NCBI GenBank assembly: GCA_002269645.1
Contig: NIVC01001377.1
Span: 186,001 to 250,000, forward strand
DNA length: 64,000 nt
Source of the DNA: Macrostomum lignano
Lineage: Eukaryota
Reading direction: 5' to 3'
Part shown: positions 3,980-47,263 of the stretch, one piece after another
How positions within the stretch are numbered: the first letter of the stretch is position 1
Layout of the letters: the number at the start of each line of letters is the position of its first letter
Notes under the pieces: model-generated
Databases searched by the model: none
Seen by the model: only the letters and a program-made list of their open reading frames with translations
What the model was told of the DNA's origin: nothing
Position numbers and translations under genes: made by a program

Positions 3980-4164
<185 letters not shown>

Positions 4165-4226
4165 GGAACTGGGGACACAATAAAGTCTGGGCAATGCGAA
4201 ATATCCTCCCTTCCTAGCAACCATCA

Positions 4227-8125
<3,899 letters not shown>

Positions 8126-8154
8126 ATCCTTGACCAGATAGTTAAATCTTTAAA

Positions 8155-8700
8155 GACATCTGGGAGGGTGACAGTCTCAGCGGATCTGGGAGGGTGACAG
8201 TCTCAGCGGATCTGGAAGGGTGACAGTCACAGGGGATCTGGGAGGGTGACATTCACAGGGGATCTGAGAGGGTGACAGTCTCAGGGGACCAAGGAGGGTG
8301 TTAGTCACAGGGGATCTGGGAGGGTGACAGTCACAGGGGATCTGGGAGGGTGACAGTCTCAGGGGATCTGGGAGGGTGACAGTCACAGGGGATCTAGGGG
8401 AGTGACAGTCTCAGGGGATCAAGGAGGGTGTTAGTCACAGGGGATCTGGGAGGGTGACAGTCTCAGGGGATCAAGGAGGGTCTTAGTCACAGGGGATCTG
8501 GGAGGGTGACAGTCACAGGGGATCTGGGAGGGTGACAGTCACAGGGGATCTGGGAGGGTGACAGTCACAAAGGATCTGGGAGGGTGACAGTCACAGGGGA
8601 TCTGGGAGGGTGACAGTCACAGGGGATCTGGGAGGGTGACATTCACAGGGGATCTGGGAGGGTGTTAGTCACAGGGGATCAAGGAGGGTGACAGTCACAG
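8155..8700. repeat. 26-bp minisatellite immediately upstream of MYG1
   Basis: Unit TCACAGGGGATCTGGGAGGGTGACAG, about 21 copies. Confidence 0.95.
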
Positions 8701-9059
8701 TGGAATGTGGTGAAATCATTATTAATCTGAAAAATGTGAAATCAAAAACAAAAAAATCATAAATAAAATGAAAAATGATTCTAACAAACAAACAGCAAGT
8801 AAAGTTGTATTTTCGTACTACTTTAATTGACTCTAATTCTAAACAGCATTAATTGATTGCAGTGAATGCGGTTTGGCCAATCATAGATCATCTTGCTAGA
8901 AGTATTTTAGCAATTCAAAATTGCATTAAACAAAATTTTAAATTGGGAATAATATTAGAAGAAAAGTGACCAGAAAAAGTCACAATACAACCAAATCACC
9001 AGACAGACACCAAACTTGCAAATATTAATATTTCAAATAACAATGATAGTATTAATTGG

Positions 9060-9715
9060 CTTTTAGGGAGATTTTCAGGATGGGTTTGAGGGCGATTCTC
9101 AAGATGGGTTTGAGGGCGTTTCTCAAGGATGGGTTGAGGGTGATTCTCAAGGATGGGTTGGGGGCGATTCTCAGGATGGGTTTGAGAGCGATTCTCAAGG
9201 ATGGGTTTGAGAGCGATTCTCAGGATGGGTTTGAGGGCGATTCTTAGGATGGGTTTGAGGGCGATTCTTAGGATGGGTTTGAGGGCGATTCTTAGGATGG
9301 GTTTGAGGGTGATTCTTAGGATGGGTTTGAGGGCGATTCTTTGGATGGGTTTGAGGGCGATTCTCAGGATGGGTTTGAGAGCGATTCTCAGGATGGGTTT
9401 GAGGTCGATTCTCCGGATGGGCTGAGGGCGATTCTCAGGATGGGTTTGAGGGCGATTCTCAGGATGGGTTGAGGGCGATTCTCAGGATGGGTTGAAGGCG
9501 ATTCTCAGGCTGGGCTTAGGGCGATTCTCAGGATGGTTGCTTGAAGGCGATTCTCAGGCTGGGTTGAGGGCGATTCTCAGGATGGTTGCTTGAGGGCGAT
9601 TCTCAGTCTGGGCTGAGGGCGATTCTTAGGATGGGCTGAGGGCGATTCTCAGGCTTCTCAGGATGGGTTGAGGGAGATCCTCAGGCTTTTTAGGATGGGT
9701 TTGAGGGCGATTCTT
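9060..9715. repeat. 23-24-bp minisatellite just downstream of the DDX1 stop
   Basis: Unit AGGATGGGTTTGAGGGCGATTCTC, about 27 copies; gives the MGLRAILR pseudo-ORFs. Confidence 0.95.
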
Positions 9716-9777
9716 ATATTGTCGAATATGAACTATTACAGATAATTTGGCATGCAACAAAGAGTCAAAGAGGCCAG

Positions 9778-12700
9778 CTACATAACGGGTGGGCCGAAGC
9801 GCATCTGCAGATAGCTATCCTGAGCTTGAGTCTCCAGACTCGCAAGCGACTTCACAGCGGACTGCATCACGCTCACGTGACCCTGGTACAGGCCAGCGCC
9901 GCCTTTTCTCTGCTTCTGTCCGTACACAACTTTGCCATCGAATTCGTTCACTGGCACAGTCATATCCGTGTCGATTTGATCGATGGTGACGCCCAGATGC
10001 TCTTCGACATCAGCTAGCAGTTGAGGCTCGTTGTACCAAATACAGCAGCCGCCCACTTCAACTAGGTTAGTGTTGGTGCAGCCGCGACCCTTGGTCTGGC
10101 AGTTGCTATGGTACCAGACTTTCTCTTTCACGTTGGCAACAAGCGAGATGGCCAGGCCCATGCGCTCGGCGCGACCGACACGGCCGATACGGTGCACGTA
10201 GTTCTGCTTCTCGTCTGGTAGCGTCACGTTGATCACGAAGGGCAGGCCTGGGTGAAATTGGGTGAGAGATGAGATTGGGTGAGAGTGAGATTAGGTGAAG
10301 GTGAGATTGTGTGAGAGAGATTGGATGAGAGTGAGATTGGGTGAGTGAGATTGGATGAGAGTGAGATTGGGTGAGAGTGAGATTGGGTGAGAGTGAGATT
10401 AGGTGAAGGTGAGATTGTGTGAGAGAGATTGGATGAGAGTGAGATTGGATGAGAGGTGAGATTGGATGAGAGGTGAGATTGGGTGAGAGGTGAGATTGGG
10501 TGAGAGGTGAGATTGGGTGAGAGGTGAGATTGGGTGAGAGTGAGATTGGGTGAGAGGTGAGATTGGGTGAGAGGTGAGATTGGATGAGAGATGAGATTGG
10601 ATGAGAGGTGAGATTGGGTGAGAGGTGAGATTGGGTGAGAGGTGAGATTGGGTGAGAGGTGAGATTGGGTGAGAGGTGAGATTGGGTGAGAGTGAGATTG
10701 GATGAGAGGTGAGATTGGATGAGAGGTGAGATTGGATGAGAGATGAGATTGGATGAGAGGTGAGATTGGATGAGGGGTGAGACCGAATGAAGACGGAACT
10801 AAGGTGAGTGTTGAGGGGTTGATCAGGAAAACAGGAGACAGGAAACAGCCAAATAGAAAAAGTGAAGTGAGATCAGAAAAGACAGCATGAGATCATTAAT
10901 AAAAAGGGGTGGGATCAGAATAAGACAGGGTGGGATCAGAATAAGACAGGGTGAGATCAGAATAAGACAGGGTGAGATCAGAATAAGACAGGGTGAGATC
11001 AGAATAAGACAGGGTGGGATCAGAATAAGACAGGGTGAGATCAGAATAAGACAGGGTGAGATCAGAATAAGACAGGGTGAGATCAGAATAAGACAGGGTG
11101 AGATCAAAATAAGACAGGGTGGGATCAAAATAAGACAGGGTGAGATCAGAATAAGACAGGGTGAGATCAGAATAAGACAGGGTGAGATCAGAATAAGACA
11201 GGGTGAGATCAGAATAAGACAGGGTGAGATCAGAATAAGACAGGGTGAGATCAGAATAAGACAGGGGAGATCAGAATAAGACAGGGTGAGATCAGAATAA
11301 GACAGGGTGAGATCAGAATAAGACAGGGTGAGATCAAAATAAGACAGGGTGGGATCAAAATAAGACAGGGTGAGATCAGAATAAGACAGGGTGAGATCAG
11401 AATAAGACAGGGTGAGATCAGAATAAGACAGGGTGAGATCAGAATAAGACAGGGTGAGATCAAAATAAGACAGGGTGGGATCAAAATAAGACAGGGTGAG
11501 ATCAGAATAAGACAGGGTGAGATCAGAATAAGACAGGGTGAGATCAGAATAAGACAGGGGGAGATTAGACAGAGTGCTCAGCTCAGGATCCAAAAGCAGA
11601 TAAGCAAAATGACGCCAGTCACTCACCTGAGATATCAATACCTCTAGCAGCCACATCGGTGCAGATGAGAAATCTCACATCAGCATTTTTGAAGCGTTCT
11701 AAATTGTCCTTGCGCTCCTGCGGCTTGCGGTCGCTGTGCAGACAGACGCAACTGTAAGGCGCGCCTTTCCTAGCCCGAGGTCCGCCACCCTTTGTTATGA
11801 ACAGGTGCTCCAGGTTGTCGCAGTCTAACTTAGTGCGACAGAAGATCAAGCACCGATCCATGTTGTGCTTCTCAATTGCTCTAATCACGTATTCGCCTTT
11901 GAGCAGTTTGACAGCTTCGGACAGAGTCTCCGGACTGTCTGAGCTGCCAACACGATCGTTGAGATGTACACCGTCAGTTTGAATTCTGGATTTGGTATTT
12001 TTGTTCAGCAACTGCCTCCAGGACTGGTCAGCCAAGGGGTCCACTGGGCACACGCAATGATGAATGGTGTCGGCCACAGAGTCTTGGCCTTTCAAATCGA
12101 TCCATACAGGAAAGTACATGAGGCGTTCGGCCATTCGCCGCACCTCCTGGGCGTGCAGAGTGGCCGAGCAGACCACCATCTGGAGGCGGCGGCCGTCGGC
12201 CGTCACCTGCAGTTGCCGAGGGGGGGGAGGTGTTCCGATAGTTGTCTCAAAAACCATCACCTCAGGGTGATGGCCGTCACCTGAAGAAGACTGGCATCTT
12301 CAAAGTAGGCTCTTAAACCGCAATTGGATGATACTGAGGATCGTCTCTAAAGTATAATGAGAATCGCATCTGTAAGACACCCGTTGAAAATGAACTCTGT
12401 AGGCTAGTTAGAGCGCAATTAGAGTGCATATTATAAATTATACTGTGACTGTTTATATTGCGTCCTAAAACGCCATGTTCTGCAGCTACTATTCAGTGAC
12501 TGCTGTTTGCCCGATGCTTGAAAGCGTGTTTAAATTTTTTTGACTACTGTTGGCTTCCGAAATACCTCGTATATTGTCATTCTAGTTAGCAATTGTCATA
12601 GCTGTTTGTTGTGACACAACGTGGGATGCGTTTCAAAGTATTCATTAAAGACTTTAAGTTAAAGACATATTCCAAAACAAATTAAACGTAAACACAGAGG

Positions 12701-15700: not shown

Positions 15701-18700
15701 CAGGCACCTTAAGGCAGAGAGACGAAGTCTGATTCGGCAACCGATATTAATCACTATCTTCATCATCAAGACCTTCGTGCCATCTGTCCATGCCCAGTCC
15801 AAGAAAGGTGCAAAAGCTATTGAAATCTTACAAACGTTCTCTTCAAAACAAGTACCACAAAACTCTATCATGCGCTCAATGCACAGGAAAATTAAGGGAA
15901 AAGTGAGAACCCCAAAAAAGGCGATATCGAGATTCACAAAAATGCATTTTGAATGAACCAGCTGCGCATGAATTCTTGACCTGGAATATTTTGATTAGCA
16001 GCATTTTTCTCTAAAGCAATCAGTGGACAAGAAAATTTTCGACATTTTACTTAAGTGTGAAATTTGCACCCACCTTGCACTTTATAGTCCTAAAGCCTAT
16101 GAATATGTTGTTATATATCGCTTGCGTTCGCTATCCCTCTGGATGTGCTGGCTGCCGCAACACAATCCTTGCGGGGCCACAGCGCAGTGTGCAATGAAGA
16201 CGAGGTCGGCGACGATGCCCCAGCCGACCCAGTCGTCTGGAATGGTACGGTGCACAGCACCAAGGCCCGGGCCCGGTACCACGTCGGTGCCGCGTACCTG
16301 ACTGGCGAGCCGCAGGAGCCGCTTGATCTTGAGTGCACGAATAACTGCCTCGGTCATCTGGCCACCTTTTTCGAAATTCTGCGGCCGACCCATTCGCTCG
16401 GCTCTTCGCCGATAGTCAGGTCCGGCGCTACCTGGCTCTGCAATCAGTTTGCAGACTACAGTGATGATTGGCGGCACCTACTGATCAGCTACAGGACGTC
16501 AATGGCCCGGACCGGCACTGCGATCCAGCAGTGGCTAGACAGCGCCGACAACATCAGGCCTGTGCCATACGGAGAGTACGCAGCATTTGCCGAGGCTGCC
16601 GGAGCTCAGCCAATGGACCGTGCGGAGTATAACACCATGGTCGATAATGTCCTGGCCACTGGCGCCGCCGCGCAGGGCCAAGGGCTAGCGCAGGCCATAG
16701 GAGGCGCCGCCCCACAGGTGGACCTGGCTGCGTTGGGCCCACTCCTCGCACAGGTACAGGCGCAGCTCGCTGCGCAAGGCGGAGCCGCCGCGGCTGCCCG
16801 CCCGGCTGCCCAGGCGGCTGCCCAGCCAGCTGCCCAGCCTGCCGCACAGCCAGCAGCCCCAGCCGCAGCACCGCAGCCGCCACCCGGCCCAGGCGGCGCA
16901 GCCGGAGGAGTAGGCCGAGGCCGAGGAGGAGGCCCGCCTGTCCCTGCGCCAGGCCACCAGGCGACCGGTGGTCTGCCGACCATGGCGGAAAACTAGAGCC
17001 GCTCAGGCCTCTACCACAGGCGGTGGCGCGCCCGCTGAGCCCGCCGCCTGCGCCTGAGCGAGATACTTCAGCTAGCACTATCCCGAAAGCCCCGGTTGTC
17101 GAGCGGCCAGACGTCTCGGGGCAGCCAACCAGGCCTTCTTTAACTTCAAAAGCGGATTTCAAACGCTAAATGCATTCCTGGATTTTGTGATCAAGCTTTA
17201 CAAGAACTATATCAGCGACGCAGCTAAGACGATGGCACAGCCTTTTACTACTGCAATGTGGTAGCCGATGCATATCAGCTGATGCATTTCCCGAACTTGA
17301 CTTGTATTCCGCGGCTGCCAGCATTGGCATTGAATCCCACGAGCTGCATTTGATTCGCAGCATGGCGCTGCTTTACATGCGGATTCGAATGTGTGGCGAA
17401 AGACCTTCCATGCACAAGAAGCAAATTAGGGACGAGGCAAAAGCTCCTAAGGACAGAAATATTTTTCTACCTGAAGTTCAGCCTATTTCAGTGGATGCCT
17501 AGTAAGTTTAACTCATACTATAACTGTACAAGCAAGCTTTAAAATGATTGATTGGAAATAATCTCTCGAAAAAAGATTTCAAGAGCTTTAAATACCGGAT
17601 TTTTCACGGAGGGATCGTACCGTCCGCGGAGGGGGTTGGCTGGGCAGTCTAGTCTTACTTCTTTCTCTGTGGAGTCAATCTCCTCTGAACGCTCCCCCAA
17701 GCTATGTGTGCACTATCTGTACGTGTATCTTCCATGTCACTGCACGCCTGGCTAGCTGGGGCCCAGACAGGGAATACTCTACATATGAAGTAATACTTCC
17801 CGATTCAGGCCTGTCTGGGCAGACTATCCCAGGCCAATGTTTCTTGCAAAGAAAACTAGCATGACTTGCCCAACGTCCTTTTTTCGAAAGATCAGAAGAG
17901 CCGGGGCAGAGAGGACGGTGAGAATAAAATGATTTTGAAGAGGAAAACAATGAATTAAGGACGCTTAATGTACATTATGTACACAATAGTGCGTACTCTG
18001 GCTCTAGAGTTGAACAATGCAAGTACATGTGCATTTTCCCTTGTCCCTTTGTTGCAGCTCATTTATATATCTTCAACAAAGTTTAGAGTAACGAAAAAAT
18101 AAAATTTTCAAATGCTGTGTTATTGACTGTAATTTCCAGCTATGCAAATGCGACACCAAGAGATAAGAAAATAAGCTTCTATTCTTTTCCAAAGGACCCT
18201 TCTTTGCTGCAGCGATGGCTACATGCCATTCCGAACAGAAATCTAAGTGCATCAGATTCTGTGCATCAAAAATTTTACGGAATCTGATTTTGTGACTCTG
18301 TCATCGGATGGGAAGCGAAAACTTGCCGCTTTGAATTCGAAAATGCAGCTGATTCGACTCAAAGCTAAAGCTGTTCCAGCTGTTCAAAGCTAAAGCTGTG
18401 TCCAGGCTCAAACCAGTGCACTGACGAATTCCTTGGAAACGATGAATTGCATGATTTTGAGGATGCTCTAATGAAGGTTGAAAGTTCTATGCTTTTATCA
18501 GGATTTGTGAGAAGCACGGACGATGAATCTATTTTATTCTACCGAATCAAGAGGTCCGTCTCACAATTCAATTCAGCTCATCAGCTTCTTGCCTCAGTCA
18601 TTGTGCTTAGGGATCTCACCTTTCAGGCGTCTATGTTTGGACTTGCTTCCCCAGCTCAAAGTTCTGACCAGTTCAGTCATCTGTTTCCAAATCAAAAGGA

Positions 18701-21700: not shown

Positions 21701-24700
21701 TGATTGCATACAAGCGTTGAAGCCTCCGGCTGAAGTCAATAATCAATCTGAGGAAACAATTCCCTATCTAAGACTCAATTTTATGTGTTCTCGTAGCACT
21801 TTAACTGGGCCGACGTTGTTTCAAACGCCGTAGTGAAAGAATTCACTTGTTGGAAGGAGGAAGAGTGCCGTAAGGAAGGAGCGCTATTCAAAGTTTTTAA
21901 GCATAAAACCGGAGAGTTAGGACCGGTTTTTATCTCTGTCGAAGAAGTTAAGGATTTGCTTATTGCATATGGTGAGCATCGACTTAAATCTGGCGCCAAA
22001 CCTAATGATCATCTTTTTTTATTCGGCGCAAGAGACCACTCATTCTCGACACTTCTGCGACAAAAGAGATCAAAGTATCCAGCATTCGAAACTATTAAGC
22101 GCTTGAACGCAAACAGCTTTCGCTATTTTTGGAGACTAAAAACCGTGAATTAAATGGAAACGACCCCGAGAAGCAACATCTTGTGAACTATTCGATGAAC
22201 CACACAAGGGCTGTTGCCGTTAAGTCTTACATGGCGAACACAACTACTTATGCCCGAGCCGCGAAGTCTGCGCTGGAATCAACATTCGATACCGCTCTAG
22301 CGGATGGCCAAGGCAGTGTTGATGCACCGACGTCAAGTTGCACACCAGCCATGAACTCGTGGCCTGCCTGTCGTAAGAAGGTCAATCACGATGCTTCGGA
22401 CGATGGAAAGAAAAAGAAAGCAGTCCAAAGCAAACCTGAAAAATAGGTTGTGCACAAACGGCACTCATCTTCGTCCCAACCTCCATCGATCGATTCGTCA
22501 GAACCTGCAGAGAAAAAGCAATCTGCTGAGGTTAATTTTAACAGCAGCCGTCTACAACACGAACATAGCTCGTATGTGTAGAACACTAGAGTGCGGAGAC
22601 ATAATCAACGCTAAGTTTTCTACATATCCTTTTTGGCCTGCTATGGTCTGCAATGACCCGGTTTCAGGAATTCGGATTCGTCGACAGGAAATTCACGTAC
22701 AATTCTTCGAAAGACCTCCTACTAGAATGTGGATTAAGTTCGGCAACATCAAGCAGTTTGATCATCAAACACGACCAATTCTTTCGTTTTTCTTTTTTTC
22801 CTTTATTGTGCTTTTGCTACATAATATTTAGCCCCATCATTGCCCTCTTTCTGTTTTTGCTTAAGAATTGAACCAAGCCCCGGTTTTTTGCTTTGAGCTG
22901 CTGATTTCTGCTGCGTGCTGCTTTTTCTGAAATAATTCCTTCAATTAAAAGGCGTAAAAGTCTCTAGGCGTAGAGCGGTTGCCTCGCTCTATCGGCTATT
23001 TGATTGAAGAGTATTTCAATTTCAAAATTGTTTCATTATCGTTATTGGTTTAATTTATTTTCAATTGTTGACTTAATTATCGTTAATCACTATTAGTCAA
23101 AAAGCTTTTTCAAACATCTATAACAGCAATTGGAAGATTGGGTAACCGAATATATAAATATTGAAAATGGCATACACAGTATGGCTACATGTGTTTATCT
23201 ATATCTGACATTATTAAGGCGCACAGGCTGATGTCACGATGGTTAGGTTTAGGGTTAGGGTTAGCTGCGTCACGCTTAATTTTTGTCTCTTTCTCGTGGG
23301 ACACACTGCGTCATTCTTGCGTCATTATTTCAAGATTTCCGCCACGTCAGATTTTTTTTCTGTTCGTCATTGACGGTCACCAATAGTACGCGTACATCAT
23401 TATCTGAAGCATAGATTTTATATTTGTTTCTGTTTTTTCCACTAATCTTTCCTGTGTCTATTTATTTCATAATCCATGCAAACAAACAATAACTGCAGCT
23501 AACTGTAGTCGGCAGCAACGACCTTAATGCTGTAACGCATCCAGAATGTCTCAGAAGTGATAAAGCACCAACGATTTGCAATGCCTCAAAAGTGCTTCGT
23601 GTGAAACTTTTCAGTGACTGAATTTATAACTAAACTAAATAAAGAGTCGTTATAGAGTCGCCCCACGGCCACGAGAGTCAACCCAGAGCCTCGAAGTGAC
23701 TTTTGGGCGATTCTTAGACAACTGTGTGACGATTTGAACCATGACTTCTCATCGTCGTTGTCGTTTAGAGTCACTTTTTTTCTTCTTTTACCTGTATAAT
23801 CTGCAACGGTTCTGGGGCGATGCAAGTAACTCTGGGACGCTTTTTCTTCTTGGATTGAGTACCGTTTTTATCGGGAAATTGGGAATTGCCTCTGAAGGAT
23901 ACTGAGAATCGCTTTTAGACCACTTTGGCCTTAAACAACACGAAGGATCCCCTTCTACCCCTAACCGATAGCAGCACTCCCTCACAATGCCCCAAAGCCG
24001 CTCACCTTAGGAATGGCCCTATGGATGCCATCAATCAGGCTTCCATACCCAGCCGATAGCAGGCCGTCGCACTCGTCCAGCACAAACAGTCGGCAGGCCT
24101 GCAGAGACAGCGCGCCCTGATCGATGAGGTCCTTCAGCCTGCCTGGCGTGGCCACAACAATGTCCACACCGCGCCGCAGGGAGTCCAGCTGCTCCTTGAC
24201 AGCCTGCCCGCCAATGATAAGCAGCTCAGTAGGGCTAGGATTAGTCAGGTAGCGTTTGAACTTGCGCAGCTGATCCAGGGTCTGCTCGGCCAGCTCCCGG
24301 GACGGCTCGATGATGATAGCCAAGGGCGCGTTCTTTGGCGGAGAGGCCGAGCTGGACTGGCTGCCAGAGCTGGAGGACTGAAAAAATGTAGATCATTAAA
24401 ATTTTACTTGTTTCTAGATTTAAAAAAATGTTTAAAAACGATCTGAAAGACGCGGTTTGTGTCTGTTGCACAATGTGTTGATATGTGTTGTTAGTTAGAC
24501 ACATTAAAAACATGTTAGTCAAATTTTTACAAACATATTGGGCAGACCCCTTTTAAACCTTCAAGAGACACCGCGCCCATAAACACGTTTGACAAACATA
24601 TCCTACAAAAACTTTGAAGACAGTCACCTGAGCCTGTTAGAAAGCTCTTTAGAACATATTTACAGACACATAAACCTTTTAGACAGACACCTAACCTGTT

Positions 24701-27700
24701 AAGACAGACACCTAAACCAGATAGACAGACACTAAATCAATTAGACAGACACTAAACCTGTTAGACAGACACCTAAATCTGTTAGACAGACACCTAAACC
24801 TGTTAGACAGACACCTAAATCTGTTAGACAGACACCTAAATATGTTAGACAGACACCTAAATATGTTAGACAGACACCTAAATCTGTTAGACAGACACCT
24901 AAATCTGTTAGACAGACACCTAAATCTGTTAGACAGACACCTAAGCCTGTTAGACAGACACCTAAATCTGTTATGTTAGACAGACATCTAAATCTGTTAG
25001 ACAGATCTAAACATTTTAGACAGACACCTAAATCTGTTAGACAGATCTAAACATTTTAGACAGACACCTAAATCTGTTAGACAGACACGTAAACCTGCTA
25101 TTAACACCCTATAGAACCTGTTAGAAATGCAGAAAGGCTAACAAATGCAATAGTCTCACTGGTCCCAATGCTACGCAGTCCTTAGCAGCCTGGCAGACGG
25201 CCACAAAAGGCTTGGACGGCGGATGCTTGAACTCGCTAAGGCCAAAGTTGACCCGCAGCTCAGCATTCTTCAGGCACACGCAGGGAAAGAACGCAGCGCT
25301 CCGATGCCCGGCATCAATGTCGAACGCTTTGCCAAACAGTTTGCCATTCTTGGAAAATGCAATTTCGCCCTTGTCCAAATCGATGAAGCAGCCAATTGTG
25401 TCGCTAAGAATGAACGATTCGCCGTACGTGTCGAACTGTTTATGGTGCGACTTTTTTCCCGTGCCGCCGTAGCCGTAGCCCTCGCCGTCCGTGCCAAGAT
25501 CAAGTTTGGCTGCCGCTGTGGCCCAGCCAATCCTAGCCAAGCCTTCGTCCGTGACCGTGGCCTCGAAGTAGTACTTGCCGCGGGTCTTCACCCCGGTTAC
25601 GGCTCTGGTGCCGTGCCAGTCCTGTGGGACATTGTTTAGCATAGCAACTGAGTTAATCCTGTATAGTTACATGACTCAAAACTTTAAATAGACAAGCTAA
25701 AATGCGCATAGCAACTAAGTTGTTGACTATGGATACGTCATTTTAATAATACATTAATACATCCAAAACAACTAGCCAAAATCCACATGGTTCCTAAACA
25801 AAAAATGACTAGCCAAAACCTACATAGCAACCAACTTGTTTACTACGGATACGTGATGCTAATCATCGGTTCCCAAAAAAATATACTAGCAAAAATATGC
25901 ATGGCAACCAAGTTGTTTACCATGGATACGTGATGCTAACTATCGGTTCCTAAACAAAAAATGACTAGCAAAAATCAGCATAGCAACGAAGTTGTTTATC
26001 ATGAATACGTGATGCTAATTATCGGTTCGTAAACAAAAAATGACCAGCAAAAATCTGCATAGCAACCAAGTTGTTTACCATGGATACGTGATGCTAATTA
26101 TTGGTTCCTAAACAAAAATGACTAGTCAAAACTTTGTATAGCAACCAAGTTGTTTACCATAGATACGTGATGCTAATCATCGGTTCCTAAATAAAAAATA
26201 ACTAATCGAAAGTCTGCATAGCAACCAAGTTGTTTACCATGGATACGTGATGCTAATCATCGGTTCCTAAACAAAAAATGACTAGCCAAAATCAGCATAG
26301 CAACGAAGTTGTTTATCATGAATACGTGATGCTAATTATCGGTTCGTAAACAAAAAATGACCAGCAAAAATCTGCATAGCAACCAAGTTGTTTACCATGG
26401 ATACGTGATGCTAATCATCGGTTCCTAAACAAAAAATGACTAGCCAAAATCAACATAGCAACCAAGTTGTTTACCATGGATACGTGATGCTAATCATCGG
26501 TTCCTAAACAAAAAATGACTAGCCAAAAGCTTGTATAGCAACCAAGTTGTTTACCATGGATACGTGATGCTAATCATCGGTTCTTAAACAAAAAATGACT
26601 AGCCAAAATCTACATAACAACTAGTTGTTTACCATTGATACGTGATGCTAATTATCGGTTGCTAAACAAAACAGACTAGTCAAAACTTTGCATAGCAACC
26701 AGGTTGTTTATCATGAATCCGTGATGCCAATCCTCGTTTCCTAAACAAAAGATGACTAGCTAAATGCATAGCAACTAATTATTTACCTTGGATACGATTA
26801 TGCGACTTAACAATGCGTTTTTATGATATCTAAAACTGACAAGCTACATACGTACATAATAATCAAGCTTTGTTCGCAGATAGGCAAGCCATTGTTCAAC
26901 TCATTCACTAACCCGTTGGTGCCGACTCTGCACCAGCAGTCCCTCTGCATCGATAGCCAATTGTTCAGTACGATCGTGCATGTTAAATCGCCAGTGCTTC
27001 TTCTGGGCAGCGGCTGTATTAGAATTGGCGGCTTCAGAGGCTGATGCAGACTTGCCGGATGATTTGCCTGCAATGAAGGTTTGTAAGTTTGGTCAATTCA
27101 AAGTCATTATGTCAGAAGAGTGCGTAGGTAAGAGTAGAGAGTGCGTAGGCCAGAATATATAGGGAAGAGTGGGTAGGGGGATTAGGGTAGAGTGGGCAGG
27201 GTATAGTAGAGGAGAGTGGGTAGGGTAGAAGTAGAGTAGGTAAGGTAGAGTATGGTGGTGGGTAGGGTAGAAGGGGAGAGTGGATAGGGGACAGTAGGGG
27301 AGGGTTGGTAGGGGAGAGGGAGTATTTAGGGGAGGGTTGGGGAGCATGTAGGGGAAAGTAGGTAGGGGAGAGTGGGTAGGGGAGTGGGTAGGGGAGAGTG
27401 GGTAGGGGAGAGTGGGTAGGGGAGAGTGGGTAGGGGAGGGTGGCTAGAGGAGAGTAGAAGAGTGGGTAGAGTAGAGAAGTAGAGGAAGTGGGTAGAGGAG
27501 TGCGCAGGGAAGTGGTTAAGAGACTAGGTAAGTGGATTAGCTAAGAGTAAGCAAAGGCAGCTCAATCCCACCTTCACTAGCATCTTTAAGTGTCTCATAG
27601 ACAATCTGCAGCACAGGCAGGCAGAAGGCGCCAGTCTTGCCACTGCCAGTTTCAGCAGCCATAAGGACATCGCCGCCGCCAAGAATCAGGGGCACAGCCT

Positions 27701-36302: not shown

Positions 36303-36368
36303 GCAGCCGAAATGAGGAAGATAACTTGCCGCTTTATAGTTAGAAACCTGCAGTTTTCTATACCCACC

Positions 36369-37365
36369 ATGCTATTCATCAAGCTTGCTTTTGTCACCTG
36401 TGTGACTGTCTTTTTTCTGGTGGCTTCTTCTGGCCAAGAGATTCCATTCATTTACATTGGTTGCTATAAAGATGACCACGATAGAGACCTGAAAGGACCC
36501 TTTAAGGATATGGTTCAAACAGCTACTCATGAGCGTTGTAGCATCTTCTGTGAAGAAAGAAATTTTCTGTTTTTCGGTTTACAAAATGGTAGACAGTGCT
36601 TTTGCGGTAATGCTTATGGATTGTATGGGCCTGTAGCGGAGAGCGGCTGCTCTTTCGACTGTCGTGGAAACTCAACCCAGAAATGCGGTGGGAGTTTTAA
36701 AAACTCGGTCTTCTCCCTTGTCTATCAAGGTAAGGCTTTGTATGCTATAGTAGATTATTTTTGTCGGTTTACTGTTATATTATACACGGAAACTGAAGCC
36801 TATGTATCAACTGGCAGTCATGTGACAACTTGTCGGACAAGTCAACTAGAAGCACCCTAGAAACAACTAGAAAAAGCAATTCAAATGCCTCACTTATAGG
36901 TTTCCATGGGTTTAGGACTCCGATTGCAGTCAGTTTGGTCTGTAGCTTTTCCTTGAGCTTCATTCTAGTCTTAAGTTAAGATGAAATCTCCACTTTTTCC
37001 ACCAAGAGCGCAGGGTAGGGACCTGGAAGGGATATCTCAAAGTTTCTAGTCAATTTCGTGACTTCGTCTATACCATTCTGATGCTTAAGTTGACATTCCC
37101 TTCACCTTCTGTAATGATTTCTACTTCAGCTGGAGACGGTTTCACTGTGACGAAACGGACCAGTCAAGTGATGCCGGAAGGACGGAGTAAGTTTTGGACC
37201 AAAGCCGCCAGATCCTACACAGAGTGCCTGATCTTCTGCCAGTCCAAAGTCAACTGCAAGGCTGCGTTTTTTGCCAATCAGCAGCTGCTGTGCTACCTGC
37301 TGAAGGCGGCCCAACTGCCTGGCAGTCTGAATGGAACCGCTGGAGACTATTTTGTCCGCAACTGA
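36369..37365 (+). CDS. Secreted WSC + PAN/apple protein, copy 1 (2 exons, about 198 aa)
   Basis: Exons 36369-36729 and 37130-37365 (phase-1 GT-AG intron). Signal peptide; WSC YIGCYKD...CSIFC...GLQNGRQCFCG...CRGNSTQKCGG; PAN ECLIFCQSKVNCKAAFF...LCYLL. Confidence 0.88.
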
Positions 37366-39473: not shown

Positions 39474-42400
39474 ATGCATCCCAACATTCTGATAACTGTA
39501 ACCTGCTCTGTCCTCACCTGCGTCTTTGGCCAAGTCATTCGATTTTCACACGTCGGCTGCTACAAAGATGATCAACATAGAGACCTTCGAGGAGCCTCAT
39601 TTATCGACACTTATTTGATGACACAAAAGCTCTGCGCCAGATTCTGTCATAAGAGAGGCTATTCATACTTTAGCGTGCAGATTGAAGAGCAGTGCTACTG
39701 CGGATGGTCATTCGGAACGTATGGAGCAGTCCCTGATAGCGAGTGCGACATGGCTTGCCCAGGTAACTCAGCTCAGAAGTGCGGCGGCAGCTGGCGAAAC
39801 TCCGTATTTTCTTTGATCTACTACCGTAAGTTGTTGAAGAATGCTTGTTATTGAGCTTATGCAGGAGGCTGTCTTGGACAACTAAAGTGAAAAAACGCTG
39901 CTCTCACAAATTATACAATGTTTTGTTTCTGTACATGTTTTGAGGGTGAATTTGGTTTGGATTCTCTCTAAAATAAGGGGCGCAGACAATTCCACGAAAA
40001 GAATAATCATATAAATCAAGCATAGATCAGATCAATCACAAAATTCCGATCGCAAGATGACGCCTACATGACCTGAAGTAGCAGCGTCCTTTGATTTCGA
40101 CAGTTCACGAATGCTAAAAGCCAAGGGAACTTCTTTTGCTGCTTCATTACACAACCGATGGTTGCAGCAAGGATAGAAAAAATCCGCAGTCTTCTTTTAG
40201 CAGGGTCGACACCATTACCCAGCAGCTTGCTAACCGGATGTCTGCTAGCCGTTCAGCTCGTTATCCAGACATTCTATCAGAGTGAACGGGATAAACTACC
40301 TACCCGATTGACTGCTGCGACACGGACGAGGCCCATATAAATAAATAAAAAAATGTCTGAATACATCGTCAGTGGGCGAAAGTCAAGCGCTAATCGAACC
40401 CACAGGCTGGCAAGCATCAGGCTAACAAACATCAGGTTAGCAAACATCAGGTTGGCAAACATCAGGTTAGCAAACATCAGGTTAGCAAACATCAGGTTAG
40501 CAAACATCAGGTTAGCAAACATCAGGTTAGCAAACATCAGGTTAGCAAACATCTTGACTTACTTGACTTAGCTGCAGGGCTGTCCCGGAGGGGACACAGC
40601 GGGAAGGCGCGGGCGCCCATTCCGCTAGTCCCTGAACGGCCGACGCGTCGCTATGGACGGAGGGTTGGCGCCGCCCAGGGAGGTCCCCCAGTGTCGCCAG
40701 CAGCTATGGTGCTCTCTGGAAAGGAGAGTTCAGCCCTGCGGGTGGCCCGAAGGTAGCGCATGAGCTGATTAAAGTTTTCGGGTTTGCACGCTTCAGTAAT
40801 AGATGTGTGTGGCCCGAGGTAAGTGAGTCTGGCCCGCGTGAAGGCGGGACAGATGCTGACGAAATGCTCAGCGGTTTCGTCACCTGAGTTGCAGAAACTA
40901 CAGGTGGCGTTGGTGGCGTTGCCCTGCAGGTACTGGTGCCTGGAGAAGCAGCCGTGACCAGAGAGGGTCATGGTGGCAGCCCGGATGTCTCTGCGCGAGA
41001 GGCGCAAGAGGAGCTTCCGGAGCTGGTGAGAGGGCTGAGGGACAGCGCCTCTGGATTGCCTGCAGTTCGTGCGGTTCGCCCAAGTCGAGCGGTGCTGAGT
41101 CCTGATCCACGCTTTGATGCGCGAGTCGATGACACAGCCAGGATCGGGACAAGAGGTTCGGGGCCGAGAGAGGAGCCGGAGGCACCAACTTTTGCAAGGG
41201 TGTCAGCCAACTCATTTCCTCGGATCCCCACATGCCCCGGAACCCACTTAAGGGTAATTTTGTTGGCGGAACCCAACACATTGAGGAGTTTGATACAGTC
41301 AAGGACTGTAGCAGAGTTGGTGCTGCAGCCACTGATGGCGTGCAAGGCAGCTTGGCTGTCCGAATGGAAAATGATGTTCTTACCAGTAACGCCAGTGGCG
41401 AGAAGCTCTGCAGTGCAGGAGCTGATGGCCAGAACTTCATTTTGGAAAACACTGGAGTTGACCCCAGTGTATTGAGCGTGGGTAGCGATGACCCTCCCGT
41501 TCAGAAAGATTCCAACACCAAAGCCGGTGTTGGCTGACTGCTTAGAACCGTCGGTGTAGCAATGAAGCTCACCAGGGTTCCAATGGTCATTGATGTTATC
41601 GCGCGAGTCGATAGCTACGGAGTAGCGCTGTCTCAGGTTGAGCGTTGAGGCAATGCCATCGGTGAAGACGCGATTGGCCTGACACTCGTTGAGAAAGTTG
41701 AGGCACAGATCGCTATGCGGGACAAGGTTCCGCTTAGCAGGTGCTCTCATGTAAATGAATTTGACGCCGGCATCAATTAGACGCCGCGTCGTTCTAGCCG
41801 CCTCACCCCTGATGAAGAGGTCAAGAGGCGGAAGATTAAGAAAGGCCCCCATGCCAGCAAAGGGCGTGGACCTGGTGGCGTTGCAGATGAGCCTACACGC
41901 TCTGCCTTGGATCGTGTTGAGCAGGTCTGCATGGCTTTTGACCTGGGTAGCGCTAACCCAGACAACAGAGGCGTACGTAATGGCAGGTCTAACTACGGAA
42001 GTATAGATCCACCAAAGCCGCTTTGGGGATAGACCCCAAGAAGTGCCAAGTGCTCGTCGGAGCTGGGCCAGGATGGCTGAGGCACGCTTAGCTTTTGCTT
42101 TCACGTGGAAGGACCAGTTGAGCCGGTGGTCAAGTGTGACCCCGAGACATCTGGTCTGGTGCGCGAAGGCAATATCTCTGCCGTAGAGCTGCAGAGGACG
42201 TATGTTCCAGCGTAGTCTGCTGGTAAACATAATGGCAACGGTTTTGGGCTCAGAGAGTTCCAAACCATTGTCATTGGCCCAGGATTCTGCTTTGCGGATA
42301 AAGCTCTGCATCAGATCCCTGAGCGTGCTGGGAGACGGTCCTGCCACAATGGCCGTGACGTCATCAGCATACCCGACTTTGAAGACGGGGTCAGGTCGGG

Positions 42401-45400
42401 AGTCACTCAGAAGAGCGTCCATGACCAGGTTCCAGAGCGTCGGGGTGAGGACTCCGCCTTGGGGTCCACCCTTACAGACTCTGGTGGAGGCAGTTTGCCC
42501 AAGAAGTTGGGCAGTGACCGTACGGTTGGAGATCATGTACATGATCCACCGTATGAGGGTAGCATGAGCTTTGCGATTTTGAAGGGCCCTCTGAAACGCT
42601 TCAAAGATAACGTTGTCGAAGGCGCCAACAATGTCAAGAAAGAGAGCCAGGGCGTAACCGTCACCCAGTACCGCCCGTTCAATCTTTTCGACAATCGCAT
42701 GCAGGGCGCTGTCAGTCGACCTCCCGGTACGGAAGGCGTGCTGATTATTGCTGAGGGGCATCGCTGTCAGCTCGCAGGAGAGCAGCCGCCAGAGAATAAG
42801 CCTCTCAGTGAGCTTAAGCATTGCTGACGTTAAGCTAATTGGCCGGAAGGCCTTGACGCTTTGGTAGTCACCCTTCCCAGGTTTGGGAATAAAGACTACT
42901 CGAGCTTCAGTCCAGCTTTTGGGAACGTATCCCAGCTGGATAGAGGCCCGCATAAGATTGCGGGTGAGTCTCAGGAACGAGGGTATCTTGGCTGCTTCAC
43001 GAAGGAGAACAGGGTAGATACCATCAGGTCCAGGAGATTTGAAGGGTTTGAAGGTTCTGACCGCACGAGCGATTAGGTCTTCAGTGACAATGCCCGCCGC
43101 TAGGGTGGCTCCATCCATCGAATGGTTGGGCTCCGGTCTAGCAGTAGGTACCCTCGGGAAGAATGTGCTAAGCATATGCTGAAGCACTTCTTCAGGGTCT
43201 TTAGTAAGAGAGCCATCATCTTTTTTTATCATGGCTAATTTGGACATTTTGTCCATTGTAAGGGCCTTGACAAGCCTAGAAGTAGGTCTGTCTTGATCCA
43301 ATTCATTGCAGAATTGGCGCCACTTACATTCCTTGGCCTTGCGCACTTCAGATTTGAAATTGCGGGAGGCTTGCCGGCAAAGCTCCATGTCCTCCGGGTT
43401 TCCGGTCTTCATGGCACGGCGATGAAGGCTTTTGGCCTTCCGCCTGAGTTTCCCCAGCTCCGGGTTCCACCACGGCGCCGAGGTCTTGCCTCTGTAGGCG
43501 CGAGCAGGACAAGCCGCTTCGTAGGCTGCAATAATGCAACCTGTCAGCGTCTCAGCCATATGATCCACATCCTCGCAGGTCTCAATCGGACGTAAGTCCG
43601 TGAGTTCCTGCAGGTGCAGATCAAGGGCAGCCTTGTAGGCCGCCCAATCAGTGTTGCGGATATTGCGTCTCCAAGTGATCGGAGACTGGGTTTTAGTGTC
43701 CGCGATATTAAAGGCGATAAAGCAGTGGTCAGACAGGGAGGGCTCCTCAGACCAGACTCTCCACTCCTTGACTCTGTCAAAGAGTCTTGGGGTAACGAGT
43801 GTGGCGTCGAGGACCTCGGTCCATCTGCCATTATTAAAGGTAGGAGTGCTGCCGCGGTTGCAGAGCATGAGGTTTGTGTTAGAGATGAGGGCCAGAAGCT
43901 CCTCTCCTCTAGTGTTGGTATCTTTGCTGCCCCAGTGCTTGTGGTGCGCGTTGAGGTCGCCCCCTAAGCACAGCTCAGCGTTCTGGGACTCGCAGTACTG
44001 CGCAAGGCGCAGTAAACTCTCGGGAGCAGGGTCTCTGTCGCCTGGGATATAAACCGAGGCAACAAGACACGTACGCGGAGAGAAATGATTAGATTGGATG
44101 ACGCAAAGGTCTCCATCAGAGAGATCAGTCCTCAGCCAAGCCTGGAGATGGCTAGCAGCGAGGATAGCCGCTCTAGGGCGGCTGTTCCCCGGGCCACACA
44201 CATAAAAATCAGAGTAGCCAGAGGGAATGTTGGGCAACTTACCGTTGCGCATCCAGGGTTCCTGGATCAGGATGAGGCCTGGCCTGTACAGCTCAGCAAT
44301 CTTCATCAGATTTACTGACGCAGATACGCAATGCTGTAAATTTATTTGCAGACAGAATGTCGCTCCTTTGGCAGCGTGGAGCTTAGTCATACTGTATTAA
44401 ATGCAATATCTGGCTAGAGCCCAGGGCCATCAAGGAGACTTGGACAACAGATCGTCCTCGTCCCAGGCCGCTGGGGCTTGACTGGGAGATGGGAGTTGGT
44501 CGACGTCCATGGCCTCCTCACCCCCACCGGCCCCCCCAGCAGAGTCCTCAGGCTCCGATGACAGGATGGAGGAAGCTTCCTCACCTGCATCTTTACCTTC
44601 AGACCCCACCAAGGTGGCCGAGGAGAGCTCGGATTCCGAAGACCCGGCCTCGTCCTCAACTCCTTCTCCGACTGGCAGGTTTGGTTCCCGGGGCTCGGCC
44701 GGAGCCGTTACCGCGGTCGCCGAACTGCTGCTAGCAGAGGGGCGAGATGCAGCTTTGGCTTTGGGATCGGCTTGCGCCTTTCCTTGGGCCTTAGACTGCG
44801 CCCCGCTCTTGCCGGAGATGCCGGGGTTGGCAGTAGCCTTCCCTTTGGCAGACTTTCCTCGGCGCAACTTGAGCTTGAGGGCACCCAGCTGGAAAGAGGA
44901 TCCATTAGGGTACCGACTCGCCCAAGTGCTGGAAAGGCCGAGGACAATTGAGTTGCCCGTCTCCCCCCTGCGGACTTTGCGGTGATACACCAGTCCACTA
45001 GCAGGGAGGTCGGGGTTCAGACGCAGTAGGACCCGGCGAATAACGTCTGGTCCAGCTGCGGTGCTCTTAGCAGGGACGAAAACCACATAGGGTATCGTCT
45101 TTGGACGCTGGCCCTCGCGAAGAAAAAGAGCTCCACCAAGGTCAGCATCCAAGGAGACCGTCGGTAGCCGCTGGAGCAGCCGCCGAGCGTCCTCCTCGCT
45201 GCTAGGAGCAATAAGAACGAATGTGCTTCGCAGCACCATCCGCTCAACGCCGATGGAGATTCCCTCCTCGACAGTCAGCTCAATCAGATAGGAGTCAACA
45301 GCACTCCACACTTTTTGAAGCTGATCAGTGGTCCAGTCCTGGTCGCGACCTTGGATGATCACTCCCGGGATTTTGGCCTTGGCCTTCGCCGCAAAGGTAG

Positions 45401-47263
45401 CTCCCGAAGGAACCTCCTTGTTGGCAGTGGCCATTTGTTGCGCCGTGGTTTCGGCCTCAGCAGCCGCGGCAGCAGCTCCAGGGAGCGCCGCCGCTGAACT
45501 ACTGGAGCTTCCACCGGCCGGCCCGCCTGGTTGCCTTGGGACTCCAGTCGCTTCAGCATCCATGGTGGACGCCGCCGCTTTGGCCCCCGCAGCTCCCTTC
45601 TTGGCCTGCCTTTTGGCGCGTTGTTTAGCGCGTTTGCGCTCAAGCCGAGCCCGCTGAGCTTCATCGGATCTGCCAGATTTGGCCGGTCCTTTAGGCTCAG
45701 AGCTCGCGGTTCCCTTAGATCCACCAGCGGAGCTGGCAGGTCTTAGGGTATTTTGAGTTTGGTAGCTCTGGTCGGATCTGCCAGCAGAGCCAGCCGGTCC
45801 TTCCTTTGCCACAGTTGAATCAGTCGGTTGGGATCTGCCAGCAGGGCCGGCCGGTCCTTCGGACTGAGGTTGGGGTTTAGAAGGGTCCCCGTCCCTAGAA
45901 ATAGCTTGTTTATCCATAGTCGGCTCGAAGGCCATGATAAAAGGTTGGTGGGCTACCCTCAAAGGGGCGCGGTACCCACCCGGCCGCTCCACCTGACCGG
46001 GCAGTAGGCCAATAGCACCCTCAAGGCTGGCCCGACACCAGGAGGGGGACCGCTTGCGACCGGACTACTCCCCGGCCTTCCAGCCCATCGGCACGGTCAA
46101 CACCTTAGGCATTAGAGAGTACGTTGAGCAGTACCACGGCCTGCAGGTTGGCGAGCCAGACCCGCATACCCAAATTCGGCCGAAGCCACTGGATAGGGTC
46201 GCCAGCGCCGGAGCCCAGTCTGTCCAGCAGCCCTAGGGACTGCCTTGAACACACGCGGGGACGAGTACCCTGGGTCGACTTGCGAGACAGCGTGGGGGGG
46301 GTCTGCGGCTGCCAGAGGCAAATAGAGGGTGCAGACCTCCCACCAGCCTTGACCTGCTGAAGATAGGGGCAGGCGTGAAGCATCGCAGACCTTAGCCCAT
46401 GGGCCTAGTCTGTCTCATACTTCACTGGCATGCTGAATACGCCTTCGCGTGCTAGCAAACATCAGGTTAGCAAACATCAGGTTAGCAAACATCAGGTTAG
46501 CAAACATCAGGTTAGCAAACATCAGGCTAGAAAACATCAGACTAGAAAACATCAGACTAGCAAACATCAGGTTAGAAAACATCAGACTAGCAAACATCAG
46601 GCTAGAAAACATCAGACTAGCAAACATCAGGCTAGAAAACATCAGGCTAGAAAACATCAGGCTAGAAAACATCAGGCTAGAAAACATCAGACTAGAAACA
46701 TCAGACTAGCAAACATCAGGCTAGAAAACATCAGGCTAGCAAACATCAGGCTAGAAAACATCAGGCTAGAAAACATCAGGCTAGAAAACATCAGACTAGC
46801 AAACATCAGGCTAGAAAACATCAGGTTAGCAAACATCAGGCTAGAAAACATCAGGCTAAAAAACGGGGTGTCTAAATCTAAACGCAGTAGTATGAATTAT
46901 TCATGCAATACTGGGTACTTTTTCATTTTTTACGCACGCGTGCGTACTCACAGACTCATCAAAATAGTAGAGAGTGTTTCGTTTACGTTTTACCTTTAAC
47001 GCACCCCTTTAAACGCACTCATTTTAGACGGCGATAACTTTAATTTGGCCAAGCGTCCAATTTTGCCGGTTTATGTACCTAACAATGACTATTTGACTGT
47101 CGGTGCCCGATCCAATATTGAGTGCGTGATCATCTGCCAGTCGAACTTCGACTGCAAGGCTGCGATTTTTGCCGCTCAGGAACTGACGTGCTACCTGCTG
47201 AAGGCGGTCAATCTGCCTGCCAGTCTGAGCGGAACCGCTGGAGACTACTTTGTCCGCAACTGA
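39474..47263 (+). CDS. Secreted WSC + PAN/apple protein, copy 2 (2 exons, about 195 aa; 7.2-kb intron hosting a LINE)
   Basis: Exons 39474-39825 and 47028-47263 (phase 1, GTAAG...TTTTAG). Same WSC and PAN motifs and the same C-terminal GTAGDYFVRN as copy 1. TATAAG near 39410. Confidence 0.85.
40403..40553. repeat. 15-bp minisatellite, left arm
   Basis: AGCAAACATCAGGTT, about 10 copies, ending at the LINE 3' tail. Confidence 0.95.
40651..44390 (-). CDS. LINE ORF2: AP endonuclease, reverse transcriptase, RNase H, zinc knuckle (about 1246 aa if one frameshift near 41141 is repaired)
   Basis: APE (QINLQH, IQEPW, GGDLNAH, SDH); RT (SPGPDG, FRPISL, LDIVGAFD, GGPQGGVL, YADD, LGVTLD); RNase H (YTDGS, EVLAI, SDSQAAL, WVPGH, GNELAD); CSFC-x8-H-x4-C. 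Confidence 0.93.
44430..45935 (-). CDS. LINE ORF1 (DUF4780-like, no CCHC knuckle), about 501 aa from ATG 45935
   Basis: Intact ORF immediately 5' of ORF2 (39-nt spacer). Low-complexity basic N- and acidic C-termini around a core WTTDQLQKVWSAV...LLRLNPDLP resembling LOA-clade ORF1. Confidence 0.8.
   Translation of the reverse strand: MAFEPTMDKQAISRDGDPSKPQPQSEGPAGPAGRSQPTDSTVAKEGPAGSAGRSDQSYQTQNTLRPASSAGGSKGTASSEPKGPAKSGRSDEAQRARLERKRAKQRAKRQAKKGAAGAKAAASTMDAEATGVPRQPGGPAGGSSSSSAAALPGAAAAAAEAETTAQQMATANKEVPSGATFAAKAKAKIPGVIIQGRDQDWTTDQLQKVWSAVDSYLIELTVEEGISIGVERMVLRSTFVLIAPSSEEDARRLLQRLPTVSLDADLGGALFLREGQRPKTIPYVVFVPAKSTAAGPDVIRRVLLRLNPDLPASGLVYHRKVRRGETGNSIVLGLSSTWASRYPNGSSFQLGALKLKLRRGKSAKGKATANPGISGKSGAQSKAQGKAQADPKAKAASRPSASSSSATAVTAPAEPREPNLPVGEGVEDEAGSSESELSSATLVGSEGKDAGEEASSILSSEPEDSAGGAGGGEEAMDVDQLPSPSQAPAAWDEDDLLSKSP
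46453..46858. repeat. 15-bp minisatellite, right arm
   Basis: Starts with AGCAAACATCAGGTT units identical to the left arm, then drifts to AGAAAACATCAGGCT/ACT; about 27 copies. Confidence 0.95.

Follow-up and report, generated by a model that had tools for sequence, protein, structure and literature searches.

Copies of the nucleocapsid (N) genes of negative-strand RNA viruses are a well-known class of endogenous viral elements (EVEs); the bornavirus-like EBLN copies, and the rhabdovirus- and chuvirus-like N copies of arthropods, are often truncated on the 5′ side and often retain an open frame. The element described here is one more member of this class, from an obscure family with uncertain hosts, the Qinviridae, and it lies on the forward strand of a 64-kb window (the whole stretch of DNA analysed, 64,000 nucleotides of contig NIVC01001377.1 of Macrostomum lignano). 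The Qinviridae (order Muvirales) are negative-strand RNA viruses with two segments, of which the L segment (5.6-6.6 kb) encodes an RNA-dependent RNA polymerase (RdRP) and the S segment (1.6-1.9 kb) encodes N only, as described by the international virus taxonomy committee (ICTV; PMC10721934). They are known almost solely from metatranscriptomes; neither virions nor replication have been described, and for most members it is uncertain which host is the true one. The ICTV family tree (Fig. 2) is built on the RdRP phylogeny (PMC10721934), and published comparisons group qinvirid N with mononegaviral N (PMC10721934; PMC11315766). As to integrated copies, an RdRP fragment of qinvirus origin has been reported in Camponotus floridanus (PMC6540820), and the Qinvirus clade is listed among the EVEs of Machilis and arthropods (PMC6955108).

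In the window, an open reading frame (ORF) within a GC-rich island encodes the C-terminal third of a qin-like N protein, and the island was copied from the 3′ part of the N gene of such a virus, as phmmer searches, a viral profile, a structure search and the ICTV description of the S segment all agree. We consider, with a probability of about 0.88, that the island is an EVE, formed when the 3′ part of the N mRNA of a qin-like virus was copied into DNA and became fixed in the chromosome of a eukaryotic, animal-like host. The preliminary description of the locus, made from the letters alone, had proposed a candidate EVE, and in this it was right: an ORF homologous to a viral structural protein is found between non-viral, AT-richer flanks. 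The features of the element, all on the + strand, are the following.

16103..17130, +, whole element, read as a 5′-truncated EVE derived from a qin-like viral N gene (S segment) (GC profile; homology confined to the island within the 64 kb)
16103..16993, +, N-gene remnant, one open frame of 297 codons with a single truncation (ORF list, frame scan, shuffles)
16181..16618, +, homology to the C-terminal lobe of qin-like N proteins (phmmer, tblastn, viral profile, alignment)
16619..16993, +, low-complexity C-terminal tail rich in Ala, Gly, Pro and Gln, in frame with the core and with an Arg-Gly repeat near its end (composition)
16793..16864, +, 12-nt tandem repeat encoding a repeated Ala-Ala-Gln-Pro stretch of the tail (Tandem Repeats Finder; repeat family)
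16987..16993, +, heptamer GGAAAAC, in frame G_GAA_AAC and not X_XXY_YYZ (sequence)
16994..16996, +, TAG, most likely the N gene's own stop (spacing from the Arg-Gly repeat compared with the relative L003)
16997..17130, +, GC-rich (0.69) post-stop sequence, presumed 3′ untranslated part of the viral N mRNA (GC values; no sequence homology)
17000..17060, +, bipartite stable hairpin with a 9-bp outer and a 10+2-bp inner stem (folding; no Rfam match; not conserved in relatives)

The ends of the element are approximate: the 5′ one falls within 16103-16181, the 3′ one within about 17130-17170.

The open frame and its qin-like relatives

Against a background of about 0.43 GC and immediate flanks of 0.43-0.44 GC, the island has a GC content of 0.61-0.74 from about 16100 to about 17130. 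Its edges are as abrupt as the preliminary description had stated, the values in 100-nt windows going from 0.35-0.41 at 16000-16050 to 0.64-0.82 at 16150-16900, and then back to 0.49 at 17100 and 0.42 at 17150. The 283-aa ORF (16145-16996, with a GTG start codon) was recovered inside the longer stop-to-stop frame of 297 codons. This frame is longer than expected by chance: composition-preserving block shuffles reached its length in 1.35% of cases over the whole island; for the frame's N-terminal part, which is less rich in GC, the figure was 0.1%. An open frame of 202 aa is also present on the minus strand within the island (16554-17162). In the conserved part of the N frame, GC at the third codon position (GC3, 0.68) exceeds that at the second (GC2, 0.51). 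The last 125 codons are composed of 31% Ala, 17% Gly, 14% Pro and 11% Gln, so that the Ala/Gly/Pro-rich tail noted earlier is confirmed and is rich in Gln too; the tandem repeat within it spans 72 nt, with 5.9 copies of the unit. Neither copies of the island elsewhere in the window nor long terminal or inverted repeats around it were found.

An exhaustive phmmer search with 16103-16720 against 1.84 billion representatives identified 15 proteins at E ≤ 1e-3 (1.2e-18 to 7.6e-4). The best match, P0001, is a 127-aa protein with 59% identity (E 1.2e-18), and the remaining proteins form a family of about 385-545 aa sharing several conserved blocks, to which the window ORF can be aligned only over the last third. 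When all family members were used in tblastn, homology in the window was restricted to 16181-16618 (E 3.5e-20 to 2.7e-8), a segment equivalent to about residues 250-363 in the 384-aa P0009 and, in a profile of viral N proteins with 387 positions, to positions 262-347. The conserved residues of the family are retained there, the alignment extending in the window from a stretch of 14 residues by way of LGHLATF and SLGSSP to DYSDDW and slightly further. The profile, built from five viral N proteins, was also run against the 1102 six-frame fragments of the window and gave a single match, 16103-16993 (E 8.8e-14; next best E 2.8). Pairwise identity of the fragment to the N proteins of viral contigs is 28-34%. 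At the level of structure, a Foldseek comparison of the AlphaFold model of P0009 with BFVD returned qinvirus or qin-like nucleocapsid proteins as all of its top seven matches (E 9e-12 to 8e-7, 16-28% identity over 355-421 columns; next E 0.25), namely those of Wenzhou, Shahe and Sanxia qinvirus-like virus 1, Frankliniella qin-like virus, Beihai sesarmid crab virus 4, Xinzhou nematode virus 3 and one unnamed entry. Profile and structure searches, which the preliminary description had suggested, thus support a viral identity for the ORF, that of a qin-like N, and not the toti-like or gag identity that it had favoured.

The family was found by the exhaustive HMMER search only. Two word-index protein searches, one with the whole ORF and one with its N-terminal part, gave zero matches, Pfam, PHROGs and PDB sequence searches with the ORF returned low-complexity noise only, and a PDB profile search with the family alignment gave no match. 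A relationship of the ORF to ORF1 of the long interspersed nuclear element (LINE) in the same window was also considered and was rejected, as the comparison shows no relation. Looked up as exact sequences, neither the ORF nor ORF2 of this LINE had an entry on record.

Full-length members of the family stand alone on contigs of 1.3-2.1 kb, as a single ORF with AT-rich flanks. Five viral contigs of the family (L010-L014, 1601-1803 nt) are present in IMG/VR; the ORFs of L012, L013 and L014 (434, 451 and 364 aa) are exactly as long as three BFVD entries, those for Wenzhou and Sanxia qinvirus-like virus 1 and Beihai sesarmid crab virus 4, but the agreement is one of length only. In L011 (1625 nt) the two termini (1-13 and 1613-1625) are complementary at 13/13 positions, and this contig is probably the complete S segment of a negative-strand RNA virus. 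The tails that follow the core vary widely in length and composition among relatives; L014 has none, and that of P0005 is about 150 aa long. The window element has its closest relative in L001, which comes from a JGI metagenome (3300040801) and is 59% identical in aa sequence over 127 codons; the L001 gene has several breaks and keeps a remnant of the N-terminal half, which is interrupted by a 12-nt microsatellite, and its flanks are unrelated to those in the window. It is a separate and older-looking insertion. Scans of metagenomes and IMG/VR for near relatives of this pair found none. The window element contains no sequence derived from L or RdRP, and the N sequence alone places it no finer than 'qin-like'.

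Other apparent integrations were encountered among the relatives. In the Bemisia tabaci chromosome OU963869.1, a 289-aa 'unnamed protein product' (P0020, at 10001-10870 of L005) belongs to the same N family (profile E 3.5e-61) and appears to be an unannotated qin-like N fossil. On the 2.9-kb contig L003, a full-length N-like ORF is followed at 1460-2740 by an integrase of a long terminal repeat (LTR) retroelement (Integrase_H2C2, rve), and in P0006 an N-terminus resembling an aspartic protease is fused to the C-terminal part of N. Some qin-like N copies are thus located in or beside LTR retroelements. The Bemisia tabaci case, several short-read assemblies and the copies beside LTR-retroelement genes suggest that N fossils are more widespread than annotated.

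Anatomy, origin and possible roles of the copy

The copy has undergone one truncation, by which the N-terminal two thirds of the gene were lost, and it has neither internal stops nor detectable frameshifts. The first in-frame ATG is found at 16502, downstream of most of the conserved region. With these two thirds gone and no start codon before the conserved part, a nucleocapsid protein cannot be produced from the copy, which is not an autonomous gene. At the other end, the TAG at 16994-16996 follows the Arg-Gly repeat by 20 codons, and the tail of L003, which lies in the −1 frame, ends 21 codons after a similar repeat; this agreement suggests that the TAG is the native stop of the gene, and the caveat in the preliminary description that the stop might reflect a simple indel is then not needed. 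The 130-170 GC-rich bases after the stop, which match nothing, are most simply regarded as the start of the viral 3′ untranslated region; where contigs of relatives are complete, 145-503 nt follow the stop.

As for the origin of the copy, a viral N mRNA may have been reverse-transcribed by the enzyme of a host retrotransposon, with an early stop or a template switch. We infer this from the 5′ truncation, from the presence of a LINE in the window, and from the relatives that lie beside an LTR integrase (L003) or are fused to an aspartic protease (P0006). The disordered tail of the virus is retained, lengthened in part by the 12-nt tandem repeat. At present the copy would most likely have no role at the protein level and would be a young or slowly decaying fossil, which could possibly serve as a template for small RNAs.

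A number of points weigh against this interpretation or limit it. There is no A-run of 5 or more in 16991-17400 that could be taken as a poly(A) tract at the edge, and the two junction zones share no direct repeat above 7 nt in length that would indicate a target-site duplication, only 7-nt chance matches being present. Of the hallmarks of a LINE-type processed insertion, the 5′ truncation is therefore the one that is seen, 3′ poly(A) and target-site duplication being absent; because these two are missing the integration route is unproven, and the 3′ boundary is compositional only. The length of the open frame, which exceeds that in 98.6-99.9% of shuffles, fits a recent insertion yet leaves room for selection on the protein. 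GC content alone does not predict a post-stop hairpin of this strength, and a fossil origin does not account for it. Finally, Foldseek against PDB with a confident model (predicted local distance difference test score 89.5, predicted template modelling score 0.86) gave no match at E ≤ 0.001, and the rabies N protein that came out on top with a weaker first model did so at E 0.86 only, which is not significant. As no fold match to a solved nucleoprotein was obtained, the label 'nucleocapsid' rests on the annotation of the qinvirus S segment and on published structure comparisons (PMC10721934; PMC11315766).

How do other explanations fare against the same evidence? That the island is not viral at all, being a chance frame in a GC-rich patch, a fragment of a host gene or a misassembled contaminant, has next to no likelihood. 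GC-rich DNA does give long frames on both strands, as the minus-strand frame illustrates, and the word-index searches were without matches, but the homology to viral N is consistent in frame, at E 8.8e-14 against the profile and with 59% identity over 127 codons to L001, and contamination of a DNA assembly by an RNA virus would not take the form of a 1-kb insert flanked cleanly by host sequence. If the island is viral, the fragment might have been co-opted by the host as a protein, for example spliced to an upstream exon or started at the internal ATG, and might interfere with related viruses as other domesticated nucleoprotein fragments do. We regard this as unlikely, even though 297 codons free of stops and frameshifts go beyond the expectation from composition and the excess of GC3 over GC2 resembles that of undecayed coding sequence: no ATG occurs until most of the conserved region has been passed, inspection of the sequence at the 5′ edge shows no obvious splice acceptor, nothing of N but its C-terminal lobe is present, and the only close relative is degraded. 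Transcription of the fossil within a small-RNA locus, yielding Piwi-interacting RNAs (piRNAs) or small interfering RNAs against related viruses, may be kept in mind as a lesser possibility, and one that would be compatible with a fossil origin. EVE-derived piRNAs have been described for many arthropod EVEs and repeats and transposons abound around the island; the flanks at 12-21 kb, however, have no further copies in the window. The reading as a 5′-truncated DNA copy of a qin-like N mRNA is therefore the one that we retain, and the explanation that the preliminary description had put forward, which concerns the end of the frame, is considered in the following section.

The heptamer, the hairpin and the −1 frames

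Programmed −1 frameshift cassettes occur at capsid-RdRP and gag-pol junctions in toti-like viruses and retroelements, and it is a junction of this kind that had been proposed for the locus, the ORF being taken as a capsid- or gag-like gene whose frameshift led into a polymerase in the source virus. Several of the underlying observations stand. GGAAAAC directly abuts the TAG stop; 6 nt downstream of it, folding reproduces the 9-bp stem (17000-17008 with 17052-17060) that encloses the inner stem of 10+2 bp; and the −1 frame is indeed open to the island edge, over 60 codons to about 17167. The hairpin, with a free energy of −39.9 kcal/mol (z −3.3), is unusually stable: 1/200 shuffles and 3/169 GC-matched windows are as stable, and it is among the two most stable 65-nt windows of the 64 kb. 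The other window of equal stability (57216-57280, −38.8 kcal/mol, GC 0.82) is situated just upstream of a 20-nt tandem array at 57509-57942. What does not stand is the slippery nature of the heptamer, which is non-canonical, its first triplet in the reading G_GAA_AAC being GGA, and which occurs six times as a 7-mer on the + strand of the window. Among the four characters of a frameshift cassette that were tested, a structure 5-9 nt downstream of the heptamer is the only one present.

A −1 frame of 60 codons is unremarkable in sequence of 60-70% GC ending at an AT-rich flank, and the frame does end where the GC-rich island ends; the encoded peptide gave a weak match to the −1-frame tail of L003 (E 0.03) without composition correction, and no similarity to the −1-frame tails of L003 and L011 with it. 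The preliminary description had implied that homologs should keep both the heptamer and the stem. In 12 relatives, however, the stretch of 90 nt that follows the stop, or the sequence beyond any candidate slip site, folded no better than shuffles (z −1.75 to +1.71), so that significant downstream structure was seen in 0/12, and no comparable hairpin occurs anywhere in the contigs of the eight relatives that were scanned whole. Canonical heptamers were found in L011 at the stop (C_CCA_AAC) and in L002, which has one 27 nt upstream, compared with a chance expectation of about 0.4 in the last 60 nt of 10 sequences (1/512 per in-frame position). An Rfam search at E ≤ 10 over 16800-17300 returned nothing relevant and no frameshift element, and a literature search brought up no paper that, judging by title or abstract, seemed to deal with frameshifting in the Qinviridae.

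We conclude that GGAAAAC and the hairpin are not a capsid-polymerase frameshift cassette. A cassette was rejected on the grounds that the heptamer is non-canonical, that the −1 frame is short and unmatched, that no polymerase follows N in the family and that the hairpin is found in none of the 12 relatives. Nor was the toti-like or gag-pol junction itself borne out, as the relatives are qin-like N genes of a segmented negative-strand virus, standing alone on a segment of 1.6-1.9 kb with no polymerase downstream. A capsid- or gag-like gene leading by −1 frameshifting into a polymerase is hence a highly improbable source for the island, despite the matching spacing and stem-loop, the open −1 frame, the canonical heptamer directly before the stop in L011 and the −1-frame tails of three relatives described below. 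The hairpin itself is a real local structure, either inherited from the viral untranslated region or a chance product in sequence of 78% GC.

Three relatives deserve separate mention. In L003 (N ORF 126-1259), L010 (230-1372) and L011 (50-1213), the N frame closes as soon as the conserved core is complete; it is the −1 frame, and in no case the +1 frame, that stays open for 35-56 further codons, which encode Pro/Arg/Gly-rich tails with a basic end that resemble the tails found in frame in other members. Between the viral contigs L010 and L011 the N bodies share only 33% identity, and in both the GC content stays high for about 120 nt past the annotated stop and drops near the end of the −1 frame. 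L011 has C_CCA_AAC directly before its stop, and U4 and G5-6 runs are close by in L003 and L010. Real recoding in these three, by a ribosomal −1 shift or by insertion of one nucleotide by the polymerase, can be suggested only tentatively, assembly indels at the G5-6 or U4 runs being the likelier explanation. If real, −1-frame tails on S segments would be unusual for a negative-strand RNA virus. The frame change in these relatives is located at the junction of core and tail; since the tail in the window is already in frame with the core, the site at the tail end to which the preliminary description had drawn attention is not at an equivalent position. That the heptamer and hairpin in the window are a fossil recoding signal, and that qin-like viruses generally make a −1 shift on the S segment to produce N with a C-terminal extension, seems to us improbable.

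Surroundings and comparison with described systems

The window is eukaryotic DNA, and the element is embedded in a host chromosome with non-viral flanks. An apparently intact non-LTR retrotransposon, the LINE mentioned above, is found on the minus strand at 40968-45992, about 24 kb from the island. Its ORF2 (40968-44390, 1140 aa) has endonuclease, reverse transcriptase and RNase H domains, and its upstream ORF (44430-45992, 520 aa) has no Pfam match; with a GC content of 0.52-0.60 it is GC-rich like the island, yet unrelated to it. Exon-like ORFs with PWWP, SPRY and WSC domains at 22391-22831 (+), 25121-25642 (−) and 36312-36860 (+) provide the only hints of host genes in the window. Arrays of micro- and minisatellites number in the dozens, with dense blocks at 3996-11569, 24662-27515 and 57509-63775 in which periods range from 4 to 118 nt and GC skew reaches +0.6 and −0.7. 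Rfam at the gathering threshold gave no family over the 64 kb. The satellite blocks suggest a repeat-rich neighbourhood, possibly subtelomeric or heterochromatic.

How does the locus compare with the systems that it resembles? What it shares with the cassettes of toti-like and gag-pol junctions is their geometry, with a 7-mer whose end is A_AAC, a spacer of 6 nt and a strong stem-loop. It differs from them in that the first triplet is GGA instead of XXX, no polymerase follows, the 60-codon −1 frame is without homology, the protein is not a capsid or gag homologue and the signal is not conserved in relatives. The case illustrates that a heptamer-like word and a strong hairpin beside a stop in GC-rich DNA can mimic a frameshift cassette, and calls for caution when such arrangements are met.

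With the N protein of the Qinviridae S segment (genus Yingvirus), by contrast, the likeness is one of sequence: 16181-16618 aligns to the C-terminal third with 28-34% identity and with the conserved residues kept, and the core is followed by a variable low-complexity tail, as in several members. The window copy nevertheless differs from its source in being chromosomal DNA instead of viral RNA and in representing about one third of the gene. Its tail is longer and far more rich in Ala, Gln and Pro than that of any relative seen, its GC content of 0.61-0.74 contrasts with 0.45-0.58 in the relatives, and its post-stop hairpin has no counterpart.

In terms of the event that produced it, the element belongs with the EBLN and the rhabdovirus- and chuvirus-like N copies, as in each case the N mRNA of a negative-strand virus was copied into host DNA. 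It comes from another source family, and visible poly(A), a target-site duplication and evidence of co-option are absent from it. A further parallel is provided by the qinvirus EVEs already reported, which derive from the same clade and likewise reside in invertebrate genomes. Whereas the Camponotus fragment, the one reported element for which the gene is given, is derived from the RdRP, the window element is derived from N, and an N-derived copy is thereby added alongside it. Through a chromosomal N fossil of this kind, a past connection is made between a qin-like virus and a definite lineage of hosts.

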